From Andalucia godoyi And28 (lineage: Eukaryota > Protista > Jakobida), in contig VRVR01000053.1 of the NCBI GenBank assembly GCA_009859145.1, positions 1-64,000 on the forward strand: 64,000 nucleotides of DNA, written 5' to 3'. The notes under the pieces were generated by a model. It was not told the origin of the DNA and ran no database searches. It saw only the letters and a list, made by a program, of their open reading frames with translations. Positions 1,856-38,255 of the stretch are shown here, piece by piece. Each line of letters begins with the position of its first letter. The first letter of the stretch is position 1. A program made the position numbers and the translations under genes.

Positions 1856-3478
1856 ATGAACGATCTCGAGGAAAAGTACCGAAAGACTTCCAGACTATGG
1901 ACAGTGCTCCGAAACCACAGAATTGCTTGTTCTGCAGGTTTGATAGTAGTTGTATTCCTTTTTGGTTCGCTCCTCACACCCCGATCCCCCACTCCGCAGC
2001 CGCAAGTGGCCACAGTCAAGCGTAGTCAAAGTGGATCCTCGAGACCTTCTGTTCCAGTGCGCCTGCCCCCACAGAGGAAAATAACTCCAGAACAAGACGA
2101 TGAGCCTGTAGAGTCGGAGGAAAATCAAGACCAAAAGCCGCAGGACGATGGTGCACGCCGAAAGCGAGAGGGAAAGTCTCCTGCCCCAGCGTCTCTTGTC
2201 AAGTCAAAGCCTGCGACAAAGTCCGCCGTTGTGGATACGATTTCCGAGGCTATTGAAAAGCCTGTGGATGAAAGCACTTTGAAAAAGGCTGCCGGAGCGT
2301 CGTCTTCTTCGACTGTGATGCGGCACCCGGTTCTTCAGCAGATCATTGACAAGGTAGATCCGATTGATTTTCTTCCTCCCATGACAGATGCCTTATTAGA
2401 AAAGCTCGAATACTGGAGACAAATCCAGCTTGCCGCGACCGGAAAGCCGTCCTCTGCAAAGTGGGACGGCAAGTTGGTTCGATGTTCGCCGTCGGCGCAG
2501 ATGGGAAATCGGGTTCGTTTTACGCTGGCATGCTTCTTCTTTGCGCTTGTAACAGACCGTGCGCTTTCTGTGGAGTTTCTTTCTGGCTTCTACGCTTCTT
2601 TGGACGATCTGTTCGACTTACCAGCGCCTCTGGAGGCCACTGCGGTTGGCGCACCAGCAGCAGGGACCTGGGGTGGCACATTTCCAGGTTCCGAAGAAGA
2701 TATCACCTGTTCGGACCTAAAGCAAAGATTCAAGGACGTTGGCTCTGTCCAGTTTTCGGGATCAGGTGCTTACTACTTTGCGCCCCACATCTGGCACAAT
2801 CCTCATCACCATGATGAACTCCTCGCCCTGTTTCCGGATGAGCGTTTCATCGACAAGTTGACTTGGTGGCTGCTCCCTCCGAACAAACAGGTATGGCAAA
2901 TTGTTCGAGACGTGTATGATGCGCACTTGTCTGATTCCACCTTCATAATCGGCCAGCAGATCCGATCCAACTGCCCGCCGGAACCGAAGACATTTATTTC
3001 AGACGCCGAATTTCAATCGCACCACGATTGCGCGGTGGAGATTACTCCAAAGGAGCACCGCAAAACTGCAAAGTGGTACGTTGCTGCGGATTCGGGAAAT
3101 GCCATCAAAGACTCTATGGAAAAGCTGGAGTTCGACGGAGCGGTTTTCCGGTGGAAGCCCGATGAGTTTGTGCTGAGTGGTGATCCAACTGGAGTTCGCC
3201 AGGCCCTTGCCGACATTATGCTGCTTGCTGTTTCAGACGAAATGATCATGTCCACCTGGTCGAGCTACGGACAGATGGCTGCCACGTATCATTTGAAGCC
3301 GTCCTACTGGGTCTCCGACTACGGTTTCCCGCTAGGCAATGACTACGCTCTCCAAGAAGAAGTGCTCCCGCATTGCTACCGCCTCTTGACAACGGAGTAT
3401 TCTGCACGCCAATACACGGAATTTGTAAGCCATGTCAGCTGCTTCACGAAAGATATGGCACCTTCCTGGTGGTTGTGA
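1856..3478 (+). CDS. Type II membrane fucosyltransferase (GT37/alpha-1,2-FUT-like)
   Basis: N-terminal TM helix and long stem, then motifs GNRVRFTLACFFFALVTDRAL, IGQQIRS, WYVAADS and ALADIMLLAVSDEMIMSTWSSYG. Confidence 0.7.
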   Translation: MNDLEEKYRKTSRLWTVLRNHRIACSAGLIVVVFLFGSLLTPRSPTPQPQVATVKRSQSGSSRPSVPVRLPPQRKITPEQDDEPVESEENQDQKPQDDGARRKREGKSPAPASLVKSKPATKSAVVDTISEAIEKPVDESTLKKAAGASSSSTVMRHPVLQQIIDKVDPIDFLPPMTDALLEKLEYWRQIQLAATGKPSSAKWDGKLVRCSPSAQMGNRVRFTLACFFFALVTDRALSVEFLSGFYASLDDLFDLPAPLEATAVGAPAAGTWGGTFPGSEEDITCSDLKQRFKDVGSVQFSGSGAYYFAPHIWHNPHHHDELLALFPDERFIDKLTWWLLPPNKQVWQIVRDVYDAHLSDSTFIIGQQIRSNCPPEPKTFISDAEFQSHHDCAVEITPKEHRKTAKWYVAADSGNAIKDSMEKLEFDGAVFRWKPDEFVLSGDPTGVRQALADIMLLAVSDEMIMSTWSSYGQMAATYHLKPSYWVSDYGFPLGNDYALQEEVLPHCYRLLTTEYSARQYTEFVSHVSCFTKDMAPSWWL

Positions 3479-3878: not shown

Positions 3879-5291
3879 ATGCTTTCTCGGTCTGCTATGC
3901 TCCACCGTGCTCCTGCGTTCACTCGATCATTTGCGAATGGAGGAGATGCGTTGAAGGCAAAACTCAAGGATGTGATCGTTCGTGAAGGAGAGAAGGTGAA
4001 GAAGATCCGAAAGGATTACGGAAACGTAATCATTGGTGATGTGACGATCGATATGGCATATGGTGGAATGCGTGGAATCAAGGGTCTCGTGTACGAGACG
4101 TCGCTTTTGGACTCCGAGGAGGGTATCCGTTTCCGTGGCCTGTCTATTCCAGAGTGCCAGGAACGGTTGCCCAAGTGGCACGACAAGGGAGAGGAGCCGC
4201 TTCCCGAAGGTCTCTTGTGGCTTTTGTTGACCGGTGAGGTTCCCACAAGCGAGCAGGTAAAGGGTATCACGCGCGAGTTTCACGAACGTGGCAATGTTCC
4301 GGAGCAGGTGGAGGCCATTATTCGCTCGTTTCCGAAGGATATGCACCCTATGACCCAGTTCTCCGCAGCCATTCTCTTGCTCCAACCACAGTCCAAGTTT
4401 GCAGCAGCGTATCGCGAGGGAGTGAACAAGTCCAAGTACTGGGAATATGCGTTTGACGACTCTCTTACTCTTCTTGCGCAGCTTCCACGCGTCGCAGCCC
4501 TCATTTACCGCAACGTTTTCAAGGACGGAAACATTACCGCGTCGTCGACACATCTGGACTGGTCTGGCAACTTCTCGCAGATGTTGGGCTTCAACGACCG
4601 CAAGTTCCATGAACTCATGCGTCTGTATCTGACGATCCATGCGGATCACGAAGGAGGCAATGTTTCTGCCCATGCCACACATCTCGTCGGCTCCGCTCTT
4701 TCAGATCCGTTCTTGTCTCTTTCCGGAGGTATGAATGGTTTGGCTGGGCCCCTCCACGGGCTTGCAAACCAGGAGGTGCTCCGTTTCTTGAAGAAGATTC
4801 AAGCACAGCTCCCTGGTCCGCAGTACACCAAGGAGGATCTTACGAAGACACTGTGGAACCATCTCAATGGGGGCCAGGTGATCCCTGGATATGGACACGC
4901 CGTACTGCGAAAGACCGACCCTCGCTACACGTGCCAACGCGAGTTTGCTCTCAAGCACATGCCCCACGACCCGAACTTCAAGCTGGTTTCGGATTTGTAT
5001 GAAGTGACTCCCAAGGTTCTCACGGAACATGGAAAGACAAAGAACCCGTTCCCCAATGTAGATGCTCACTCGGGAGTCTTGCTGCAGCACTATGGCCTTG
5101 TGGAAGAAGATTATTATACTGTGTTGTTTGGAGTTTCGCGAGCAGTTGGCGTGCTCTCGCAGCTGGTCCTTTCTCGTGCGCTGGGTCTTCCGATCGAACG
5201 TCCGAAGTCGGTTACCACTGAATGGGTTGAGAAGTACATTGCCTCCAATAAGGACAAGCTCCGTGTTGCAAAAGGTGCCGCCGAGGAATAA
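3879..5291 (+). CDS. CS: Citrate synthase, mitochondrial type
   Basis: Presequence-like N-terminus. Motifs [54 protein letters not shown] and PNVDAHSG. Confidence 0.97.
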
Positions 5292-18419: not shown

Positions 18420-18680
18420 GGATACTCGCTATTACGGTAATACATACATACATATATACATATGTTATTTGTCGGTACTATGTCTCCTTTTATTCGCATT
18501 TCACATATGACATGAAAAGAGAGCGACCTCAAGTGGAGTCAAGTTCCGCACCTTTTTTGGGCATCAAAAAGGCAGACGGAAAAGTCCGAAAAGGCCGAAT
18601 GGAGATCTTTTCTTGCTGCTGGCTGCGTTTTCGTGTTAGTACAGACATTATCAAAAGAAACGAGAGTCGCAAGACGAAAG

Positions 18681-21600
18681 ATGTCGGCACCAAAGCTTCC
18701 GAATTTTGATTCGGATGACTCAGAAGATGGTTTGGATGTGGATGTGGATGTGGATGTGGATGCCGACGCCGACGCGGCTGATGTGCACAAACCGTTTGAA
18801 GCACTTGCTGTGCTTCATGCATTAAAGAATGATTTTGACCGCGGACTGCAAATCATTGACCCATCCGCGGCAGTGGCGTCTGCATCAGCGTCTGCAATGG
18901 ATGGAACAGATTTTGCAGACGCCGATTTTGGAGTTACCGCAAATCAAAGGTTTCTTACGGAAACCGACTGGAATGCAGCTGCGGAAGATCGAAACCAGCT
19001 GCTGCTCGATGTCGAGCGGGACTTTGATATTTCTGTTCCACCGATCGAGAATGATGATCGACAAGACTCGGCTGGTGCTGCTCGCGCGACAGCCGCCGTA
19101 AAGGACGGAAATGCGTCGACCGCAGTGAGTACTGTGAATGGCGTCGGCAAGTCGCGAAGTGCTGTGAATCGACTGCTGGCCGCTGAGCTTATCGGTGCTT
19201 CGTCAGGGTCGGATAGAAAGAAGCAGCTTCGAAGCCAGTTGTATGGAGTCGACATGAAGGACGAGATTGCTGCGGAAAGAGCTGCGAAACGGGCTCGAAG
19301 AGGTGGAGGAAAGAAAAGAGGAAGAGGGAAACGGCAGCTCCCACCTGAGCTGCAGAACATGATGCGAGTCGCGAATAATCATGTAGCGTTTGGAGACAAC
19401 TTGAAGGAGGCTGCAAAGCTGTGTCTGCAGGTTATTCAAAAGGCACCGGGATTTGCAGAGCCGTATCAAACACTGGCATCAATTTACGATCACGAAGGAA
19501 ACCATCAGCGTTCATTCTCGCTGCTGTTCATGGCGGCACATCTGTCTCCAAAGTCATCCAATCTCTGGATAGACCTGGGGAACAGCCGAGTGTGCACAGC
19601 TTCGCAAAAGGCATATTGCATGTCGCAGCTTATGACACACTGTCGGGATGAGATCACGAAGGACGACGATCAGCTGGCGTTTGTTTATGCAACACGGGCT
19701 TGTGCGTACCGAGATTTGGGGCTGGTGTTTCGGTTTATTGCCGACGCAAAACGGGCGATTGAAAAGTACGCCTCTTTGGGAAGAGTGGAGGAGCTGCTGC
19801 TAATTGTGCAAGATGCTGTTCGCGTGGAGTGTGATCGTCAGAACTTTGCTGATGCCGCGAAACTCTTGGAGCATGTGCTCCAGCTGCTCAAAGTGGATTT
19901 TGACTGCGAACATCAGCCAGCATATTTGTGGACCATCATGAACTTCTACTGCGAATGCCTTGCCATGGACCATCGCTACGGCGACATTGTGGAGAAGATG
20001 GGACGGATCGGTGGAAGTTGCAAAGATGAGATCCCGCTGGAGCTCATTGTGCGATACGCAACTGCGTTCATCCATGCTGGAGAGGTCTCAAGTGCCGAGC
20101 GGGTTTTGCAGCAGTGGTTTTCTCGTAGCGCAAGTCCAGAGGAGTTCGGAGACTTGTACATTGATGTTGGAAACGCGTACTACGATCAAATTGAGTTTCG
20201 CCTTGCTCTCCATTATTATCGACGACTTGTGGATCCGCCTACCCGATTTATGGGGCCGTTTGTCTGGCTCCGGATTGCACACTGTCAGTCAAACCTGCAT
20301 CTTATGGATGACGCCATCGAATCTTTTCGCATGGTACTGAATGATGTGCCGAATAATATGGAAGCCCGATTGGAATTGGCGCGGTTGCTGGAGAGCCAAG
20401 GTCGAAAAGACGAGCTTGTGTTTGTTCTCCGAGACGAGTCGGAGATGAATGCCGCCGAAATCATTAGGAGGTTGGAAGAAAAGGAGCGCTTGCTGAATCG
20501 CATGTCCATGACGGCTTCGACTGGAGCTTCCGGGAGTTTTGCCGCGCGATCTGCAACGACGTCGACTGTGCCCCAGGGTGCAGCAGATGTCGAACGCTTG
20601 AAGCAAGAGATTGATGTCGAGCTACGCTACTTGGCCCAAACGTCTTTGATGCTACTTGATAATCACAACATGGCAGCTTTCATGGAGGCTGCTGTGCCGC
20701 TGTTTCAGCGTGTTCTCTCTCTGCGGGACGAGGATTTTCAATCCAGTTCTCTCTTCTCGGAGTATCGACTTCATTCCCTGTCCACAAAGTCATCTCAACC
20801 GATGTCTGCTCCCGACAAAACACGGCGAAAAGCACCTGCGTGTGGAAAAAGGGCAAGCGAGAAGGATGCTGACGCCGACACGTTGGACGCACTTGACGGT
20901 GCGGATGACGACGAACCGGATGAACTGTCCGTTTCCACTGTTGATCCCGAAAAGCGAAATCTTGTTTTGTGGACGTGGAAGTCTGTTGTGAGTGCCGTTT
21001 CGGAAGAAGGGGCAGTCCGCATGGTAGCAGCACTGTGCCTTTCCTTGCGCGACGTGCGCTCGCTGGTATTTATCATGCAAGTGCTGCATCTCCAGTTGTT
21101 TCGATCCCACAGCTCCGAGTGCGAAATGTTCCGCATTTTGTACGTGCAGATTGCAATGGAGCGTGGTATCTATTTTCAGGCGTTTCTGCAAGCTCGTCAG
21201 CTAATGAGGGAGCGGCCGAGCGCCACGTCTGCTTGGAATCTGGTGGCCAAGACGATTCGCCATCTTCCTGAAGGCTTTTTGCGCCTTCACTACCGGTTTG
21301 CTGCGCGGCTTACCAGATGCGTGGAGCATGACCCGGTGCTCTCCATCAAGTCTGGCCGCGTCTGCCTGTCGGGGATCCGCGAAAGCCAAGCTCTTGACAG
21401 AGATCGGCTGTTCCTCTGCGCCCGGCTTGTTGTTATCAACCATGCGCACTCTGCGTTTCACCGGCATGCCCTTGGAGAGTATTACGCGTTGAGTCTGACG
21501 TATCCCGACGAGCCGCTTGTCCAGTTTTGTTTGGCAACTGCTCTGTTGTCCGTCAGCAGGAACAAGTCAGTTCCCTTCTGGAACCAGATGGCACTGTATG

Positions 21601-21875
21601 GCTTGGCATATCTGAATCGATCTGCTTCGCTTCGCGGCGCCAGCCACGCTGCAGAATCTCTGTACAATCGCGCAAGGTACTGCCAGGCGCTCGGGATGAA
21701 TACGTGGGCAATGGAATTGTATTCCGAGATTCTCAATGCGCCCTCTGATTCTCCGACTCTTCCGGATGTTCAAAGAGTTCGGCGAGAATCTGCACATAAT
21801 GTTGCTCTGATGTTCCGATCTGCTGGAAATGATGTGGCTGCTCGCGCGGTGGTCGAAAAACACTTGTCCTTTTAG
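18681..21875 (+). CDS. GTF3C3: TFIIIC subunit 3 (Tfc4), TPR protein
   Basis: Acidic N-terminus, then EPYQTLASIYD...FMAAHLSPK TPR block and C-terminal ESAHNVALMFRSAGNDVAARAVV. Confidence 0.85.
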   Translation: MSAPKLPNFDSDDSEDGLDVDVDVDVDADADAADVHKPFEALAVLHALKNDFDRGLQIIDPSAAVASASASAMDGTDFADADFGVTANQRFLTETDWNAAAEDRNQLLLDVERDFDISVPPIENDDRQDSAGAARATAAVKDGNASTAVSTVNGVGKSRSAVNRLLAAELIGASSGSDRKKQLRSQLYGVDMKDEIAAERAAKRARRGGGKKRGRGKRQLPPELQNMMRVANNHVAFGDNLKEAAKLCLQVIQKAPGFAEPYQTLASIYDHEGNHQRSFSLLFMAAHLSPKSSNLWIDLGNSRVCTASQKAYCMSQLMTHCRDEITKDDDQLAFVYATRACAYRDLGLVFRFIADAKRAIEKYASLGRVEELLLIVQDAVRVECDRQNFADAAKLLEHVLQLLKVDFDCEHQPAYLWTIMNFYCECLAMDHRYGDIVEKMGRIGGSCKDEIPLELIVRYATAFIHAGEVSSAERVLQQWFSRSASPEEFGDLYIDVGNAYYDQIEFRLALHYYRRLVDPPTRFMGPFVWLRIAHCQSNLHLMDDAIESFRMVLNDVPNNMEARLELARLLESQGRKDELVFVLRDESEMNAAEIIRRLEEKERLLNRMSMTASTGASGSFAARSATTSTVPQGAADVERLKQEIDVELRYLAQTSLMLLDNHNMAAFMEAAVPLFQRVLSLRDEDFQSSSLFSEYRLHSLSTKSSQPMSAPDKTRRKAPACGKRASEKDADADTLDALDGADDDEPDELSVSTVDPEKRNLVLWTWKSVVSAVSEEGAVRMVAALCLSLRDVRSLVFIMQVLHLQLFRSHSSECEMFRILYVQIAMERGIYFQAFLQARQLMRERPSATSAWNLVAKTIRHLPEGFLRLHYRFAARLTRCVEHDPVLSIKSGRVCLSGIRESQALDRDRLFLCARLVVINHAHSAFHRHALGEYYALSLTYPDEPLVQFCLATALLSVSRNKSVPFWNQMALYGLAYLNRSASLRGASHAAESLYNRARYCQALGMNTWAMELYSEILNAPSDSPTLPDVQRVRRESAHNVALMFRSAGNDVAARAVVEKHLSF

Positions 21876-22106
21876 CACTTCGTTATCTTGTCTGGGAGTT
21901 GTTGTTTTTTTGTTTTGTGTGTGTGCGTGTGTGTGTGTGTATGTATGTGTTTCCAAGTCGGCTTGGTCTTTTTTTCTTGTACAAATGGAGGAATGGAAGC
22001 ATGTACAGTGTTCTTCTTGTTGTAGTTATTATTATTATCAATACTATTGCTATTGCTGACTGTTCCGTTTGAACAACAACAACAAACAAACAAACAACAG
22101 TGGCAA

Positions 22107-30139: not shown

Positions 30140-31990
30140 TCACGAAAAGTCGTCTGTGATTTTGGTTTCCGTGTCAAAGATGCGGCGCTTGAGCATGTAG
30201 TATGGTCTGTTTTCCCATCCATCCAGCGGCCCGACTGCCGCATCCTTGCGCCGAACTGCATCTCGCCACAAGCTCCACACCAGCCACGCGCACTCCTCGA
30301 TGTCGTCCGACACTGAACCGTCATCTGGAGAGAGCTGTAGCTCATAGTCGACGGGCTTCTGCCATGTCGTGACTGGATGCGTGCGAATGGCACTATATTG
30401 CAGAGAGTCCACCAAGGCAGCAGTTCCCGCCACAGACGACGACAGCCTCGTGAAACTTCCTGAACGGGAGCCCGAAGAGAAGGACGCGCCCCCACTTCCA
30501 CTACCAGCACTCGCCCGGCCAGTCGGCGACTTCTTGTCTCCGTTTGTTGCAGAAGATGACGAAAACATGAAGCTTGCCCCTCGCAATCCATTTGGCTTTC
30601 CATCTACCCTGTAAACATCGATGCATACAAGATCGGCGAGCCGCAGGATTTTGTATCCTTTGCTTTCCACAAAGGTGTTCTGCTTTGGACTGAACGCGCA
30701 CGAAGCCATGGACGACGATGTCAGGACAATCCGTCGCCTGTCCCTCGTTCCTTTGTGATTCGCCTTCACAAAGTGGGAGTAAACCCGCAGCGGCTGATTT
30801 CCAAGAGCAGCTGCAGATGCTTGGATCTGGCGAACATCCGCTTCGATTGGAACATAAAACCCCCGAAGCCCCTTTGCAATCGACTCTAGCATGCGCTCCG
30901 ATGGATTTCCGTTGACGTTATTGATCCCCGAGTTCGCATAGTTGGCGGTGATCGACAGTCGGGACGCAATGGATGTAATGGAAGGCGAGCACGCATGAAA
31001 CCACGACATTGAAGTAAGTAACGTCCGTCTTGATACAGTCGATGCGAGGCCGGTGTAGCAGACCAGTGCTGCCACAAAAATCAAGCCTACATTCGCCAAC
31101 GACGATGCATCTGATGGATCGTGCACTTCAGGAACCGAGATCTGCACGCCGTCCTCCACAACCTCCACCATCACGAAGGTTTGCTTTGCTGCACCACCGT
31201 CCGCCCCATCCTCTCTATCCGCCGTCTCCGCCGTGCTCGCTGCTATCTCCTGCTTCTTGCCCTCGTGTTGCTCGCTGTTGCCAGCGAGCATCTTTGGCGG
31301 TTCCGAGCTCAACGCTTTGCGAGTTACGAACCGAACGCAAACCAGAAACTCGGAAAAGACCTGGGTTGGCGGCATAGACCCGTCGAGAGAGTCTCTTCTG
31401 GTCCTCAAGCTGTCCTTGATTTGCTCGGGAGAAGTCAGCAGTGCCGCCAGCACATCTGTCCGAAGCGCGGCTCTGCACGACTGAATGACCTTTTCAAGCA
31501 GCGAAACGGACACTTCTGGATCCGCAACGACGCAAATCTCGCTCGGCTGAAACACAAACAAATGCTGGATGAAAAGCGAGAGGTCTCTTGCCATTTCCGC
31601 GACTTGCGTCCTTACCCATCTTGACTGCACCAATGAATTTTTCAAAATCGACACAAAGGGGATGGGCTGCATGCGCACCGATGGCACATGAACAGTAAGG
31701 ACGGCGGTATGGCAGTCAGCCCAGTCAACCGTCACCGGCTGCACACCATCCTCGAAAACTGTCGACGCAGTCAGCACAAAGTTCTCAAGAGTCCCTGCAG
31801 GTCGCGGGCTGAGCTCCAACACAAGCGAAACAAGTTCACAGTACTCGGAATCTGTCCATGCAGTAGCAAGAGCTTCCAGCGTCGGTCTCAAAAACGTCTC
31901 GGACTCGTGCGCAAGCCGGAGCTCAACATTCGCCTCGGATATGGAAAACGTGTCTGCCAGACGGCTTCGAATCGTACTTGCAAGTGCCAT
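30140..31990 (-). CDS. Hypothetical protein with possible C-terminal PH-like domain
   Basis: 616-aa ORF. FVKANHKGTRDRRRIVLT resembles the first strands of a PH domain. Confidence 0.6.
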   Translation of the reverse strand: MALASTIRSRLADTFSISEANVELRLAHESETFLRPTLEALATAWTDSEYCELVSLVLELSPRPAGTLENFVLTASTVFEDGVQPVTVDWADCHTAVLTVHVPSVRMQPIPFVSILKNSLVQSRWVRTQVAEMARDLSLFIQHLFVFQPSEICVVADPEVSVSLLEKVIQSCRAALRTDVLAALLTSPEQIKDSLRTRRDSLDGSMPPTQVFSEFLVCVRFVTRKALSSEPPKMLAGNSEQHEGKKQEIAASTAETADREDGADGGAAKQTFVMVEVVEDGVQISVPEVHDPSDASSLANVGLIFVAALVCYTGLASTVSRRTLLTSMSWFHACSPSITSIASRLSITANYANSGINNVNGNPSERMLESIAKGLRGFYVPIEADVRQIQASAAALGNQPLRVYSHFVKANHKGTRDRRRIVLTSSSMASCAFSPKQNTFVESKGYKILRLADLVCIDVYRVDGKPNGLRGASFMFSSSSATNGDKKSPTGRASAGSGSGGASFSSGSRSGSFTRLSSSVAGTAALVDSLQYSAIRTHPVTTWQKPVDYELQLSPDDGSVSDDIEECAWLVWSLWRDAVRRKDAAVGPLDGWENRPYYMLKRRIFDTETKITDDFS

Positions 31991-34590: not shown

Positions 34591-36372
34591 TCAGCAGAGC
34601 GGTGGGGGAGACCTGTGATCTGCCGGCACCGAACTTGGAACAGGGACCAGGTGGAGGTGCGGTGGGTTTGACTGCACAACACAAGCAGATGGATGCTTCG
34701 CATGCGAACCGTGCGGAGAACAGCGACACTCTAGCAGCCTGCGGGCAGAGTCGGGATGGATGTGCAGGCGATGATGGTGCGTCACGAGAGCAAGAACTCG
34801 TTTTTCATTCAGCTGCGTGTTGAAAGCACTCTGGACAACGACTCGGCCGCCGACAAACCGAGAAACGCAAAACCGGCCGTTCTTGTCATAGCCCATCACG
34901 ACGCGCCTGCCCACGCTTGATGCCGTCGGATGGTTGCATCCCAAACGGATGCATGCATGGAGCTGAGAATGCGGATGAAGCATCGCAGCTCTTTCGCGAG
35001 GCAAGCGCTCGAAAACTGAGCTTGTTCCTTGGGAGTACACGATGACAAGAGCGTCTCGTGAAGACACTGGAACAAGCACATCGCGCTTGGGCAAAATCAC
35101 AGTGTCCCACACGCTCCTCCACTGGTCTACAATCCGCATGCGAACCGGAAATCGGGTAGTATTGCACACTAGCTGGCAATCACTTTCATACACTGGGGCA
35201 GGAGAATTCGGAAAGTACAGCATGGCTTCCGGGTCAATTTGACAAGTAGACGTCGTACTTTCGTGGTCTGTTGCGGGGGTCTCATTTCCCCTGCATGCAT
35301 TGCCTGCCCGTTCTCGAGGAGTGAGCTTCCCGTGACAAGACTGCACAGGAATCGGCAACACCGAGAGTGGCGGAAGTCCGTCCACAAGGGCTGCGTCGTC
35401 GACGGACATTCGACGGCATCTCTTCCTTACCACATTACAACGAAGAAGCTCTACAATGGCCTGCGTATTCGCCGATTCATTTGCCTTTTCTTCCTCTGCA
35501 GCAACACCACTGTCCCTGCTGTTGCTGGTGCTGATGCTCATCTTTGATGAGTTTTCGTTCCATACATTGTGTCGTTCTCGCTCAGGAGACAAGAATGAAT
35601 TCCGCTTACTCATACCCAGGAGAACAGCATTGGACTCGGACTTTCGCATACGGATGATAGTTGCTGGTCTTTCCGCCACCAACGGCGTCAACAGTCCGGA
35701 CTCGGGGTGACACGCCACATCATGCCCGTTACCGTCACTGTTGCTTCTCTCTCGGTTGCCGTCCGAAGAGGCGGAGCCAGACAGTGCGCCGAGATTGGTG
35801 TCCATCGACCGTCGTGCATGCGGACTTTGCGGAGCCATGTCGCACACAGTGTCTGTATCTGTATCTGTATCCAGCAAGCCCACTGACAATTTCACAGACA
35901 CAAACTCATCATGTTCATGTTGATGTTGATGATGATGGTGGTGGTGGTGGTGGTGGCGGTAGTGGTTGTTCTTGTTGTTAATGCTGCTGCTGCTGCTGTT
36001 GTTGCTGTCGTCGTCGTCGTCGTCGTCGTCACATCGGACGACTGGTGTTGTGGAAGGCGGAGGTGGGACTCCGTGCATGATCACCGACTGGCTGTACGCA
36101 GTTGGTCGAACAAGACAAGGATCCGAGGACTGATGAAGAAGAATGCTTGGTGGCCGTTGGTGGTAAATCGTCCGACGACTGCTCGTGCTGCCACGGACGC
36201 CAGGCGAGGCACCCTTTGGAGAATCCTCGCATCCCTCCGAGGTGGCATCCGAAATCATATCTTCCGTCACGCTGTTATGTCGCTTCAGCCAAGGCATCAT
36301 CACACGATGGAGCCCGGGATCCACGATGTTGCTGTCGCTGCTGCTCACTTTTTTGGAAAATCCACAACCCAT
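34591..36372 (-). CDS. Hypothetical low-complexity protein with N-myristoylation/palmitoylation-like start
   Basis: Long ORF. Start placed at MGCGFSKK because the upstream in-frame sequence is microsatellite. Confidence 0.6.
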   Translation of the reverse strand: MGCGFSKKVSSSDSNIVDPGLHRVMMPWLKRHNSVTEDMISDATSEGCEDSPKGASPGVRGSTSSRRTIYHQRPPSILLHQSSDPCLVRPTAYSQSVIMHGVPPPPSTTPVVRCDDDDDDDDSNNSSSSSINNKNNHYRHHHHHHHHHQHQHEHDEFVSVKLSVGLLDTDTDTDTVCDMAPQSPHARRSMDTNLGALSGSASSDGNRERSNSDGNGHDVACHPESGLLTPLVAERPATIIRMRKSESNAVLLGMSKRNSFLSPERERHNVWNENSSKMSISTSNSRDSGVAAEEEKANESANTQAIVELLRCNVVRKRCRRMSVDDAALVDGLPPLSVLPIPVQSCHGKLTPRERAGNACRGNETPATDHESTTSTCQIDPEAMLYFPNSPAPVYESDCQLVCNTTRFPVRMRIVDQWRSVWDTVILPKRDVLVPVSSRDALVIVYSQGTSSVFERLPRERAAMLHPHSQLHACIRLGCNHPTASSVGRRVVMGYDKNGRFCVSRFVGGRVVVQSAFNTQLNEKRVLALVTHHHRLHIHPDSARRLLECRCSPHGSHAKHPSACVVQSNPPHLHLVPVPSSVPADHRSPPPLC

Positions 36373-36474
36373 TTCAAAACCCAAGCACCACTGACCGATC
36401 CTTGTTTTCCTCCTTTTTAGAACAACAACAAAATAAAGAATTAAAAAAAGAACACGGAACAAGGAACAACAACC

Positions 36475-36518
<44 letters not shown>

Positions 36519-37180
36519 TTTTTGTTTTTAAAAAGAAAACAAAACAACGCGTTCTTTTTCCTGCTTTTTCCCTGTTTTTTCCCTTTGAAAGTTTCAATTC
36601 AACCAAGAGTATAAATATATACTGCACTTGCAGAAATTGCGGGCGGAAAGAGGACACCTCTCAGCTTTCAGTGTGCCAGCAGATGGAAGTCGTCTGACGT
36701 TGTTGGTACTTGGCCAGTCAAGGCATGTTGCTTATCCCCCTTGTCCTTTTTCCTTGGCGAGAACATGGGTATGAGGAAACCTGGGAAAGCGCGTCGCAAT
36801 GTGGTAGCGGTTAGAAATAGCATAGGCGACGCAAAGGCAAAAATAACAAAATGGTGAATGCGCAATAGCGGGAAACGAGGAAGCGGAGCACGAGAGAGAT
36901 ATTTTTGTCCGTCGGGGTTGCCTTTTTAGGACGGGAATTTCCGCTTCGTCGGCATTTTGTCCAAAGCCGGGAATACTCGAGTTGGCTCCATTTGGTTCAA
37001 GCATTGAATCCCCTGCTCTCTGAGATGCCAAACCCGAGTGAGTAGCGCTTCTTAAGCGATGCTGCGCGGATGCGTGCACGTTTCGGAAAAACTCGATTCT
37101 GAAATATCTGACATCACGAACTCGGAAACAACCAATACTACTACTACTGCTGCTGCTGCTACCACGACGTGTTGGCCCCT

Positions 37181-38255
37181 ATGAGTTGCACTGATTTTGA
37201 AAAGATAAAGGCGCTGGCGAGCTGCAAGGGACTGACGGTGTCCTCGATGATTACTTATGTGATTCCGTCGTCCGTTAACGGCCTTTAGCCATGCGCTGTC
37301 CTTTGTTGCAAAGGAGCAGGCGACCGCGTACAATATCCGGGACCGGTTGAATCGCCGCAGCGTCGTCCGCGGTCTTACGGTCCTTCGTGAGCGCCTGCTC
37401 AAGCTGTCTTCCGAGGAAAAGAAGCGCAAAGCAGTCGAAGAGAAGGGGCTCGGGTGTCTTGTGGGTATTGAGGAACACGGAGACGAGATTGTGGAGTGCT
37501 TAGTACCCGTCGCGCCGTTTGACCGAGGCTGCTATTTTTGCAAATCCACGTTTGAAGTCGATGCAATGCTGTTCCACTTCGACGAGTCGCAGCACGCAAG
37601 TTGTGGCCTCGTCAAGATGGATGGCCACGAGTGCGTAGTGGGCCTGCTCACCGAAGGCCGGTTTGTGGTGCGAAAGACAGTGTGGGCAAACATTGCAAAA
37701 CGACACAAGAAAGGCGGGCAAAGCAGCTTACGGTTCGCAAGACTTGCGGAAGAGTCTCGGCAAGCATACGTCCAAGAGTGCGTCGATGCAGTGCACGCAG
37801 CGCTCAAGCCCGACTACCCAATATTTGCATTCGGGAGCGAAGAACTGCTGTCGATGCTTTTGGCCAGCAAAGCATGTTTGGTCGAGCTGATCAGGAAACA
37901 GGCAGGTCCGTCGGTCCGCTCAGATAGTCCTTTTGGAGTCGCAAAGAGCACCGTCCAGGAGTGGATGGCAGCTTGGAAAGAACAGCACAAGGAGACCCCG
38001 GCCGTCGAACGATTCCAAGAGCTTGTGCACCGGCACCCAGACATGCTCGTATTTGGAGTCGCTGAAGCCCTCCAGCACGCCGTGGACTGTCGGTCGTTTA
38101 TATGTACCACCCAGGTCTTCCATACCCTCAACGAAGACCCTGCAATCCAGGAAAAGTGTGTGGAAATACGCACAGAGTCTCCGCATTATGCGTGGATCCG
38201 CGCTTTTGGCATTGTAGGACTGCGATTCAGCGCCGCTCCAGCAAAGTTTGCCTAA
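37181..38255 (+). CDS. Divergent eRF1-family class I release factor, about 357 aa, requiring a +1 shift at 37283-37289
   Basis: Frame 0 gives MSCTDFEKIKALASCKGLTVSSMITYVIPSSVNGL* (compare eRF1 [20 protein letters not shown]). The +1 frame gives SHALSFVAKEQATAYNIRDRLNRRSVV (compare TASNIKSRVNR), YFCKSTF (YxCxxxF) and KKGGQSSLRFARL (GGQ). Confidence 0.85.
37283..37289 (+). other. Candidate programmed +1 ribosomal frameshift site CTT-TAG-C
   Basis: Lies exactly at the frame break of the eRF1-like gene and parallels the bacterial prfB site CTT-TGA-C. Confidence 0.65.

Follow-up and report, generated by a model that had tools for sequence, protein, structure and literature searches.

Organization of an interrupted release-factor gene

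The window analysed here is the whole stretch of 64,000 nucleotides at positions 1 to 64,000 (forward strand) of contig VRVR01000053.1 from the jakobid Andalucia godoyi And28, and the subject of this work is a gene on its plus strand (37181..38255) that encodes an eRF1-family release factor in two successive reading frames. Read directly from the sequence, the gene begins with a short open reading frame (ORF1; 37181..37285) of 35 sense codons, which starts with an ATG at 37181-37183, ends with the codon CTT and encodes the peptide MSCTDFEKIKALASCKGLTVSSMITYVIPSSVNGL, corresponding to the start of the eRF1 N domain and including the equivalent of the GTS loop (..GLTVSSMITYVIP..). ORF1 runs into the heptamer CTT TAG C (37283..37289; CTT at 37283-85, TAG at 37286-88 and C at 37289), referred to here as the shifty stop. 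ORF2 (37287..38255) lies in the +1 frame of the same strand, starts with AGC at 37287 and continues for 322 codons to 38252, where it is closed by TAA (38253-55) followed by T; its reading frame opens at 37263, just after a stop codon. It encodes the remainder of the N domain, the M domain and a short C domain, and carries NIRD, the equivalent of the NIKS decoding motif (37332..37343; family consensus NIKD), the YxCxxxF decoding motif as YFCKSTF (37533..37553), and the GGQ motif for peptidyl-tRNA hydrolysis (37713..37721). Residues Y83, C85 and F89 of the second motif and G143 and G144 of the third were invariant in the family alignment.

The initial annotation of this DNA had described 35 codons from the ATG at 37181 to CTT TAG C, a +1 frame of 322 codons from AGC 37287 with a NIKS equivalent, YxCxxxF and GGQ, and a first ATG in that frame about 90 codons downstream. 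Direct reading agreed on all of these, the ATG being codon 94 of ORF2 (37566..37568); the range it gave, 37181-37400, covers the junction but not the whole gene, which extends from 37181 to 38255. The database gene model (P0001; 229 amino acids, 37566-38255) begins at this internal ATG and lacks the region containing NIRD and YxCxxxF. It is truncated, leaving out the whole decoding region, and the reading given here corrects it.

The window contained 131 NTT-stop-Y sites, many of them with long +1 ORFs simply from lying inside genes, and the CTT TAG C heptamer by itself is not above chance. Its significance comes instead from the homology present on both sides of the stop. At one of the other sites, a TPR-repeat gene (18633-21875) ends in TTT TAG C (21870-21876) at its normal stop, which given 131 such sites is most likely a coincidence.

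Identity of the encoded protein

ORF1 and ORF2 were always searched as separate pieces and never as a joined protein. ORF2 matched Pfam family eRF1_2 at 5.8e-11, with a weaker acVLRF1 match across the GGQ domain, and among solved structures in the PDB it matched S. pombe eRF1 (3e20, 5e-18) in an alignment starting at chain residue 55. Since ORF2 aligns with eRF1 only from residue 55, another source must provide the first ~50 residues of the N domain, and ORF1 does so. Of the 1669 six-frame segments of the window, ORF1 was the sole match (E 4.3e-10) to a profile of 18 viral ORF1 peptides made without the window sequence, and the segment ranked second had an E value of 0.31. Similarly, a profile hidden Markov model (HMM) of viral-type short release factors, built from 38 members with the window sequence left out, matched ORF2 end to end with 215.6 bits and E 4e-68 (HMM positions 4-296 of 301). 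Against a profile of 20 canonical eRF1s, ORF2 scored 113.6 bits over the N and M domains only, with the alignment stopping at position 211 of 425. Segments confined to canonical proteins correspond roughly to residues 331-382 of a canonical eRF1 representative, and the ORF2 product ends ..IVGLRFSAAPAKFA with neither a mini-domain nor an acidic C-terminal tail.

The AlphaFold2 model of ORF2 had a predicted local distance difference test score (pLDDT) of 91.7, and a Foldseek search with this model ranked eRF1 first among solved structures (E 3e-16), followed by aRF1 and then Pelota/Dom34. Its best viral structural matches were annotated eRF1s of Hyperionvirus, Bodo saltans virus, Yasminevirus, Catovirus and Moumouvirus, most of which were listed at 160-305 amino acids (Hyperionvirus 364), lengths expected of ORF2 fragments. 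Pfam eRF1_2, PDB eRF1, the family HMM and Foldseek thus agreed with the earlier assignment to the eRF1 family. The window gene kept GGQ, YxCxxxF, the glutamate of the KE..NI[KR]D region and nearly all residues that are invariant in the family.

Three other identities were considered and rejected. A canonical eRF1 was discounted on TAYNIRD in place of TASNIKS, VSS in place of GTS, the lack of a mini-domain and C-terminal tail, and the interrupted ORF. The protein is not a bacterial RF2, as it has the eRF1 fold and the stop is UAG. Dom34/Pelota was dismissed because GGQ, YxCxxxF and NIRD are present and Pelota structures ranked below both eRF1 and aRF1.

Relatives of the gene and conservation of the stop

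A word-based search of 5.8 billion proteins returned only two relatives, each on an AT-rich contig and directly preceded by a short ORF, and an exhaustive profile search was needed for the family to be seen. This second search recovered 78 cluster representatives at E <1e-30, mostly of 270-350 amino acids. The predicted N termini of many of these read '..[VIA]FS.F[LI].KE...NIKD', in which FS represents TTT AGC read in the ORF2 frame, meaning that the DNA is NTT TAG C in the upstream frame. We read the junction DNA of 18 distinct short-family loci (L001-L007, L009 and L011-L021; L003 and L015 coincide, and L007 has a second contig, L008). At all 18, NTT TAG or NTT TGA followed by C or T was found at the homologous position, with continuation in the +1 frame. 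Each also had a short ORF1 with an ATG and a conserved peptide, ..G(L/x)T(V/P)SS(L/M)(I/V)T...(P/S)...., and homology resumed in the +1 frame as S.F(L/I).KE...NI(K/R)D in every case. The P-site codon varied across these loci and the window (CTT in 5, window included; TTT in 6; ATT in 6; GTT in 2), with 'TT-stop' constant.

The interruption is common in the short family but not universal, as the N-terminal peptide appeared fused without a stop in three members (P0150, P0156 and P0170; protein predictions). Two further loci, L031 (ATT TGA C) and L044 (CTT TGA C), had the stop at the homologous position (locus ~1490) with the downstream ORF in frame, so bypass there would require read-through and not frameshifting. 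L031, from a 1.47-Mb viral genome, has another in-frame stop upstream, like that described for Mimivirus. Retention of the stop with an in-frame continuation indicates that the stop itself is what is conserved. That it persists at this position regardless of the mode of bypass, +1 shift or in-frame read-through, is the signature that a sensor of termination efficiency would predict. An upstream UGA-C read-through stop in frame was found neither between the ATG at 37181 and the shifty stop of the window gene nor in L001-L021, so it is not a defining trait of the wider family.

The carriers of the short-family relatives are giant viruses. Locus L003 and L011-L021 came from IMG/VR contigs, and 9/11 of these were named GVMAG (giant-virus metagenome-assembled genomes), while L006 was accompanied by genes for RNA polymerase Rpb2, TFIIS, Bro-N, P11_C and HSP70. 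Viral relative loci had 19-43% GC. L009, on a Logan contig (SRR12113420) of 52% GC, had CTT TGA T at 4375-4381 followed by a second TGA, and of these stops it comes nearest to the bacterial RF2 motif; Pfam matches among the genes around it were limited to ankyrin repeats.

We also observed a second class of viral eRF1-like genes in IMG/VR (L037, L038, L039, L041, L042 and L043) with a +1 shifty stop elsewhere, at locus ~1480-1500. In these, ATT, GTT, CTT or TTT is followed by TAG or TGA and then C or T some 85-105 codons into the gene, after the NIK(S/D) motif and just 5' of the ..PP...YxCxxxF strand; L043 had 56% GC. As this stop lies elsewhere, viral release-factor genes must have gained or relocated the same signal on at least two occasions.

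Taken by sequence and gene architecture, and not by its carrier, the window gene is a Mimiviridae-type short eRF1 (R726/mg280-like). This assignment was made against giant-virus metagenome contigs by sequence, against named Imitervirales eRF1s by structure and against R726 and mg280 by published motifs, since the sequence search for relatives yielded metagenome proteins only and the named Imitervirales eRF1s were matched by structure alone. The likeness to the recoded eRF1 genes of Mimivirus and Megavirus that the initial annotation had pointed out therefore held, with the same motif at the same position in 18/18 loci read and in the published genes (PMC3521657, PMC6582330). The check it proposed, whether CTT-TAG/TAA/TGA-C is conserved at this codon in relatives, came out positive among giant-virus relatives for NTT-TAG/TGA-C/T, with the qualifications that the P-site codon varies and that L031 and L044 continue in frame. 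The gene does belong to a cellular genome, as had been proposed, but encodes a divergent giant-virus-type paralogue (TAYNIRD, no mini-domain or tail) and not the canonical eRF1 of the cell.

Genomic context

The window is cellular, forming part of an A. godoyi nuclear contig. Neighbours identified by Pfam included genes for citrate synthase, an M16 peptidase, D-serine dehydratase, bestrophin, GST, a PX-domain protein, ribosomal protein uL13, an acyltransferase, oxidosqualene cyclase, an MTR4 helicase, a PP-type phosphatase and a Bax inhibitor, and the large ORFs with Pfam matches were nearly all uninterrupted and lay on both strands. The A. godoyi genome, of ~20 Mb, is compact with most genes intronless (PMC7050145). 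An exact match to the uL13 protein is encoded at 39065 of contig VRVR01000053.1 in assembly GCA_009859145.1 (A. godoyi accession VRVR00000000), which places the window as the first 64 kb of that contig. Other relatives of uL13 did not exceed 66% identity, in keeping with an isolated lineage. No viral hallmark genes were seen in the window (Pfam on 28 large ORFs returned cellular families or no match), and ORF 30143-31990, which lies 5 kb upstream of the release-factor gene and had no Pfam match, had no relative in IMG/VR. An endogenous giant-virus island, considered as an explanation for the locus, had no support, the Pfam-matched ORFs all being cellular.

The composition of the release-factor gene resembled that of its host. 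It has 55% GC, a GC content at third codon positions (GC3) of 0.625 compared with 0.59 for host genes, and an in-frame codon log-likelihood (mean log P) under host usage of -4.01, which falls inside the span of host genes (-3.95 to -4.05). The 17 Pfam-supported genes of the window terminated in TAG (7), TGA (6) and TAA (4).

Upstream of the gene, a 41-codon ORF in the ORF2 frame (37059..37184, plus strand) ends in a TGA that overlaps the ORF1 start (ATGA, 37181-37184). If this ORF is transcribed, initiation at ORF1 could depend on termination and re-initiation. An (ACT)n(GCT)n trinucleotide tract (37139-37165) lies immediately 5' of the release-factor start codon. Farther upstream, long runs of Cys, Asp, His, Asn and Thr/Ala codons occupy 35900-36560, in and around a minus-strand ORF of 688 codons (34591-36657) that had no Pfam match. 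A GT37 (xyloglucan-fucosyltransferase) domain, uncommon outside plants, occurs in the protein encoded at 1856-3475 of the window.

Proposed expression and origin of the gene

We interpret the locus as a viral-type eRF1 paralogue, probably derived from a giant virus, that would be expressed by programmed +1 frameshifting at the shifty stop, and give this reading a probability of about 0.65. Under this proposal, ribosomes would start at the ATG at 37181 and arrive at CUU UAG C after 35 codons, where the release factor of the cell would compete with +1 re-pairing of tRNA-Leu. Prompt recognition of UAG would release a 35-residue peptide, whereas slow termination would allow the P-site tRNA-Leu to re-pair from CUU to UUU, after which AGC would be read next and a protein of ~357 residues, comprising N, M (GGQ) and short C domains, would be made. 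The amount of full-length factor would then rise as termination capacity falls, making the site a sensor of termination efficiency, and if the product itself reads UAG, a negative, self-limiting feedback loop such as that of bacterial RF2 would result.

Homology to an established, experimentally studied viral system gives recoding good support as an interpretation. In most short-family members a +1 shift from NUU onto UUU is the only route to the rest of the protein, and the earlier view that an intact N domain needs recoding or splicing is supported in the form of such a shift at CTT TAG C. We infer that A. godoyi ribosomes make the shift, that the resulting protein can release peptides and that feedback follows; that the gene is an autoregulated cellular release factor is a hypothesis, drawn by analogy. 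The fullest version of the proposal, a working cellular sensor of termination capacity and the first nuclear eukaryotic class-I release-factor gene under +1 frameshifting at a stop read by its own product or by canonical eRF1, is advanced tentatively, with the odds somewhat against it.

Several observations weigh against our interpretation. In quick and careful trees alike, the window gene branched off between the short viral clade and canonical eRF1, and the split separating it from the viral clade had support of 85/94 in the careful tree. Forcing the gene inside the viral clade was not rejected (approximately unbiased test, p 0.58), with a likelihood slightly above that of the quick free tree. 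These trees were built without an archaeal outgroup, for a gene with a long branch and deviant composition, and they are compatible with transfer in either direction and with a place inside or beside the viral clade. The terminal branch, at 1.6 substitutions per site, is long enough that the gene may have changed function. The annotated gene model starts at the internal ATG at 37566, and TAG-C was not visibly avoided as a terminator, ending 2/17 of the Pfam-supported genes (a small sample). No significant RNA structure was found 3' of the site (z -0.03) or 5' of it (z -1.87), and in relatives such structure was weak or absent. The published release assay was done with the eRF1 of Marseillevirus, which is of a different, eukaryote-like class from the Mimiviridae type (PMC6582330).

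Acquisition from a giant virus is the most likely origin. Word-based and profile searches revealed no other eukaryotic homologue, and the presence of one cellular copy as opposed to many viral ones favours transfer from virus to host, while the host-like codon usage suggests a long residence in the host. A bolder version is that the jakobid copy may represent the cellular lineage from which the Mimiviridae took a release factor with its shifty stop. This opposite direction is compatible with the tree, since the gene joins the sampled viral clade at its base and has no robust position within it. If it were true, the RF2-like circuit would be an ancient innovation of eukaryotes and not a peculiarity of viruses.

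Alternative explanations

The alternatives weighed under ALTERNATIVES were a variant code, a tiny intron, an assembly error, a product made from the internal ATG only, and a relic. The main rival is the last, in which a viral gene was transferred together with its shifty stop and is now dead or dying, either silent or terminating at codon 36. We regard this as unlikely, but it draws on real features of the locus: the window holds the sole cellular copy seen, the other family members with DNA read being on AT-rich, virus-like contigs, the terminal branch is long, and annotators found only the truncated model. Against it, codon usage and GC3 like those of the host imply long residence, and in spite of this both ORFs are open over 357 codons and have kept the start codon, heptamer, GGQ and YxCxxxF. 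Under neutrality, the chance of 322 stop-free codons would be approximately (61/64)^322, or roughly 2e-7. A different reduction of the gene, to a protein of M and C domains with GGQ that is made from the ATG at 37566 and acts as a codon-independent rescue factor, would account for the start of P0001 and for the weaker Pfam match to acVLRF1 over the GGQ domain. We consider it improbable, as ORF1 and the 93 ORF2 codons before that ATG are conserved as protein (NIRD, YxCxxxF and the GTS-loop strand), which would be unexplained if this region were untranslated.

Removal of a tiny intron would restore the frame, either as a 22-nt segment (GTCGTC...TTTAG, 37267-37288), which the initial annotation had listed as a possible escape from recoding, or as one of 49 nt (GTCCTC...TAG, 37240-37288). 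Candidates that run from GT to AG, end at the TAG and have a length (19-148 nt) of 1 mod 3 do exist, but the donors GTCGTC and GTCCTC are poor fits to the usual 5' splice site, GTRNGT. The 134 verified introns of A. godoyi are 55-756 nt long with a mean of 151 (PMC7050145), making an intron of 22 nt implausible. Splicing would moreover remove conserved N-domain residues, and no comparable candidate recurred at a fixed position in the viral relatives, all of which retain the stop and the +1 continuation, leaving this explanation with very little to recommend it. An assembly or sequencing indel that broke a continuous ORF, the other escape named at the outset, is slightly less credible still. 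Single-base indels are frequent among assembly errors, but this one would have had to fall exactly at the conserved site of the family and recreate the heptamer of Mimivirus, in a genome for which excellent agreement with RNA sequencing has been reported (PMC7050145). Least probable of all, to the point that we rejected it, is a variant genetic code with TAG as a sense codon and no need for recoding. The idea has precedent in several protist lineages in which TAG is reassigned, but TAG terminates 7/17 of the Pfam-supported genes here, excluding reassignment, and all three stops are in use as terminators in the window. Long conserved ORFs lack in-frame TAG, and homology past the stop changes to the +1 frame instead of continuing in frame.

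Significance

The gene is of a known kind in an unexpected cellular carrier. To our knowledge, programmed +1 frameshifting of eRF1-type factors has been reported in giant viruses only, and we know of no viruses of jakobids, nor did we find any in the literature. No paper was found to connect either eRF1 or giant viruses (Nucleocytoviricota) with Andalucia, and the A. godoyi genome paper mentions neither eRF1 nor viruses (PMC7050145). The window gene is the first candidate, among cellular release-factor genes of eukaryotes, for an output that may vary with the efficiency of termination. It combines a viral-type signal with host-like composition in a free-living, early-branching protist, and offers a cellular system for testing whether eRF1-type factors can be under feedback control by termination efficiency. 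It also documents gene flow between Mimiviridae-like viruses and jakobids, and it bears on the source of viral translation genes.

Comparison with known systems

The closest known systems are the interrupted eRF1 genes of the Mimiviridae. Mimivirus R726 has CUU UAG C and Megavirus mg280 has CUU UAA C, and the authors who described these took up the shift in experiments and report that full-length R726 protein is made by bypass of its two internal stops (PMC3521657). Interrupted eRF1 genes with the consensus CUUUAG have also been described in Bodo saltans virus, Klosneuviruses and Tupanviruses, and the Mimiviridae factors have no mini-domain and are C-terminally truncated (PMC6582330). The window gene shares with this group the eRF1 fold, GGQ, YxCxxxF, altered GTS and NIKS motifs (NIKD/NIRD), the missing mini-domain and truncated C terminus, and NUU UAG C placed ~15-20 codons before the NIKS equivalent with the rest of the gene in the +1 frame. 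Its heptamer is identical to that of R726, and its own terminator is TAA-T, as in Mimivirus. It differs in its location on a nuclear chromosome among housekeeping neighbours, in its host codon usage and 55% GC (compared with 19-43%), in a 3-residue insertion after the junction, and in its long branch, which arises at the foot of the sampled viral clade or close to it. In addition, the upstream UGA-C read-through stop of Mimivirus and Megavirus is missing.

Programmed +1 frameshifting in RF2 is a textbook bacterial circuit. Like bacterial prfB (RF2, CUU UGA C), the window gene has a short ORF1 and a weak stop after CUU at which tRNA-Leu could slip to UUU, and its product would be a class-I release factor, allowing feedback. 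The two differ in fold (eRF1/aRF1 as opposed to RF1/RF2) and in the stop, which is UAG and not UGA, and a Shine-Dalgarno-like stimulator is absent in a eukaryote. The likeness of the heptamer logic to that of RF2 is one of analogy only.

Other eukaryotic +1 sites include UCC UGA U in antizyme, CUU AGG C in yeast Ty1 and ABP140, and AAA-UAA/UAG in Euplotes. These have in common with the proposed mechanism a +1 re-pairing of the P-site tRNA during slow decoding in the A site, but the heptamers, genes and stimulators are different and none is in a release-factor gene. Plant eRF1-1, which is autoregulated through stop-codon read-through and nonsense-mediated decay (PMC5397192), provides a precedent for a eukaryotic cellular eRF1 that senses termination efficiency at a stop in its own mRNA. 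There, however, read-through and mRNA decay act at the normal stop of a canonical eRF1, whereas the window gene would use an early +1 frameshift in a paralogue. Canonical eRF1 and Dom34/Pelota belong to the same three-domain superfamily as the window protein, which is set apart from the former by TAYNIRD, the lack of a mini-domain or acidic tail and the interrupted ORF, and from Pelota by having kept GGQ and the decoding motifs.

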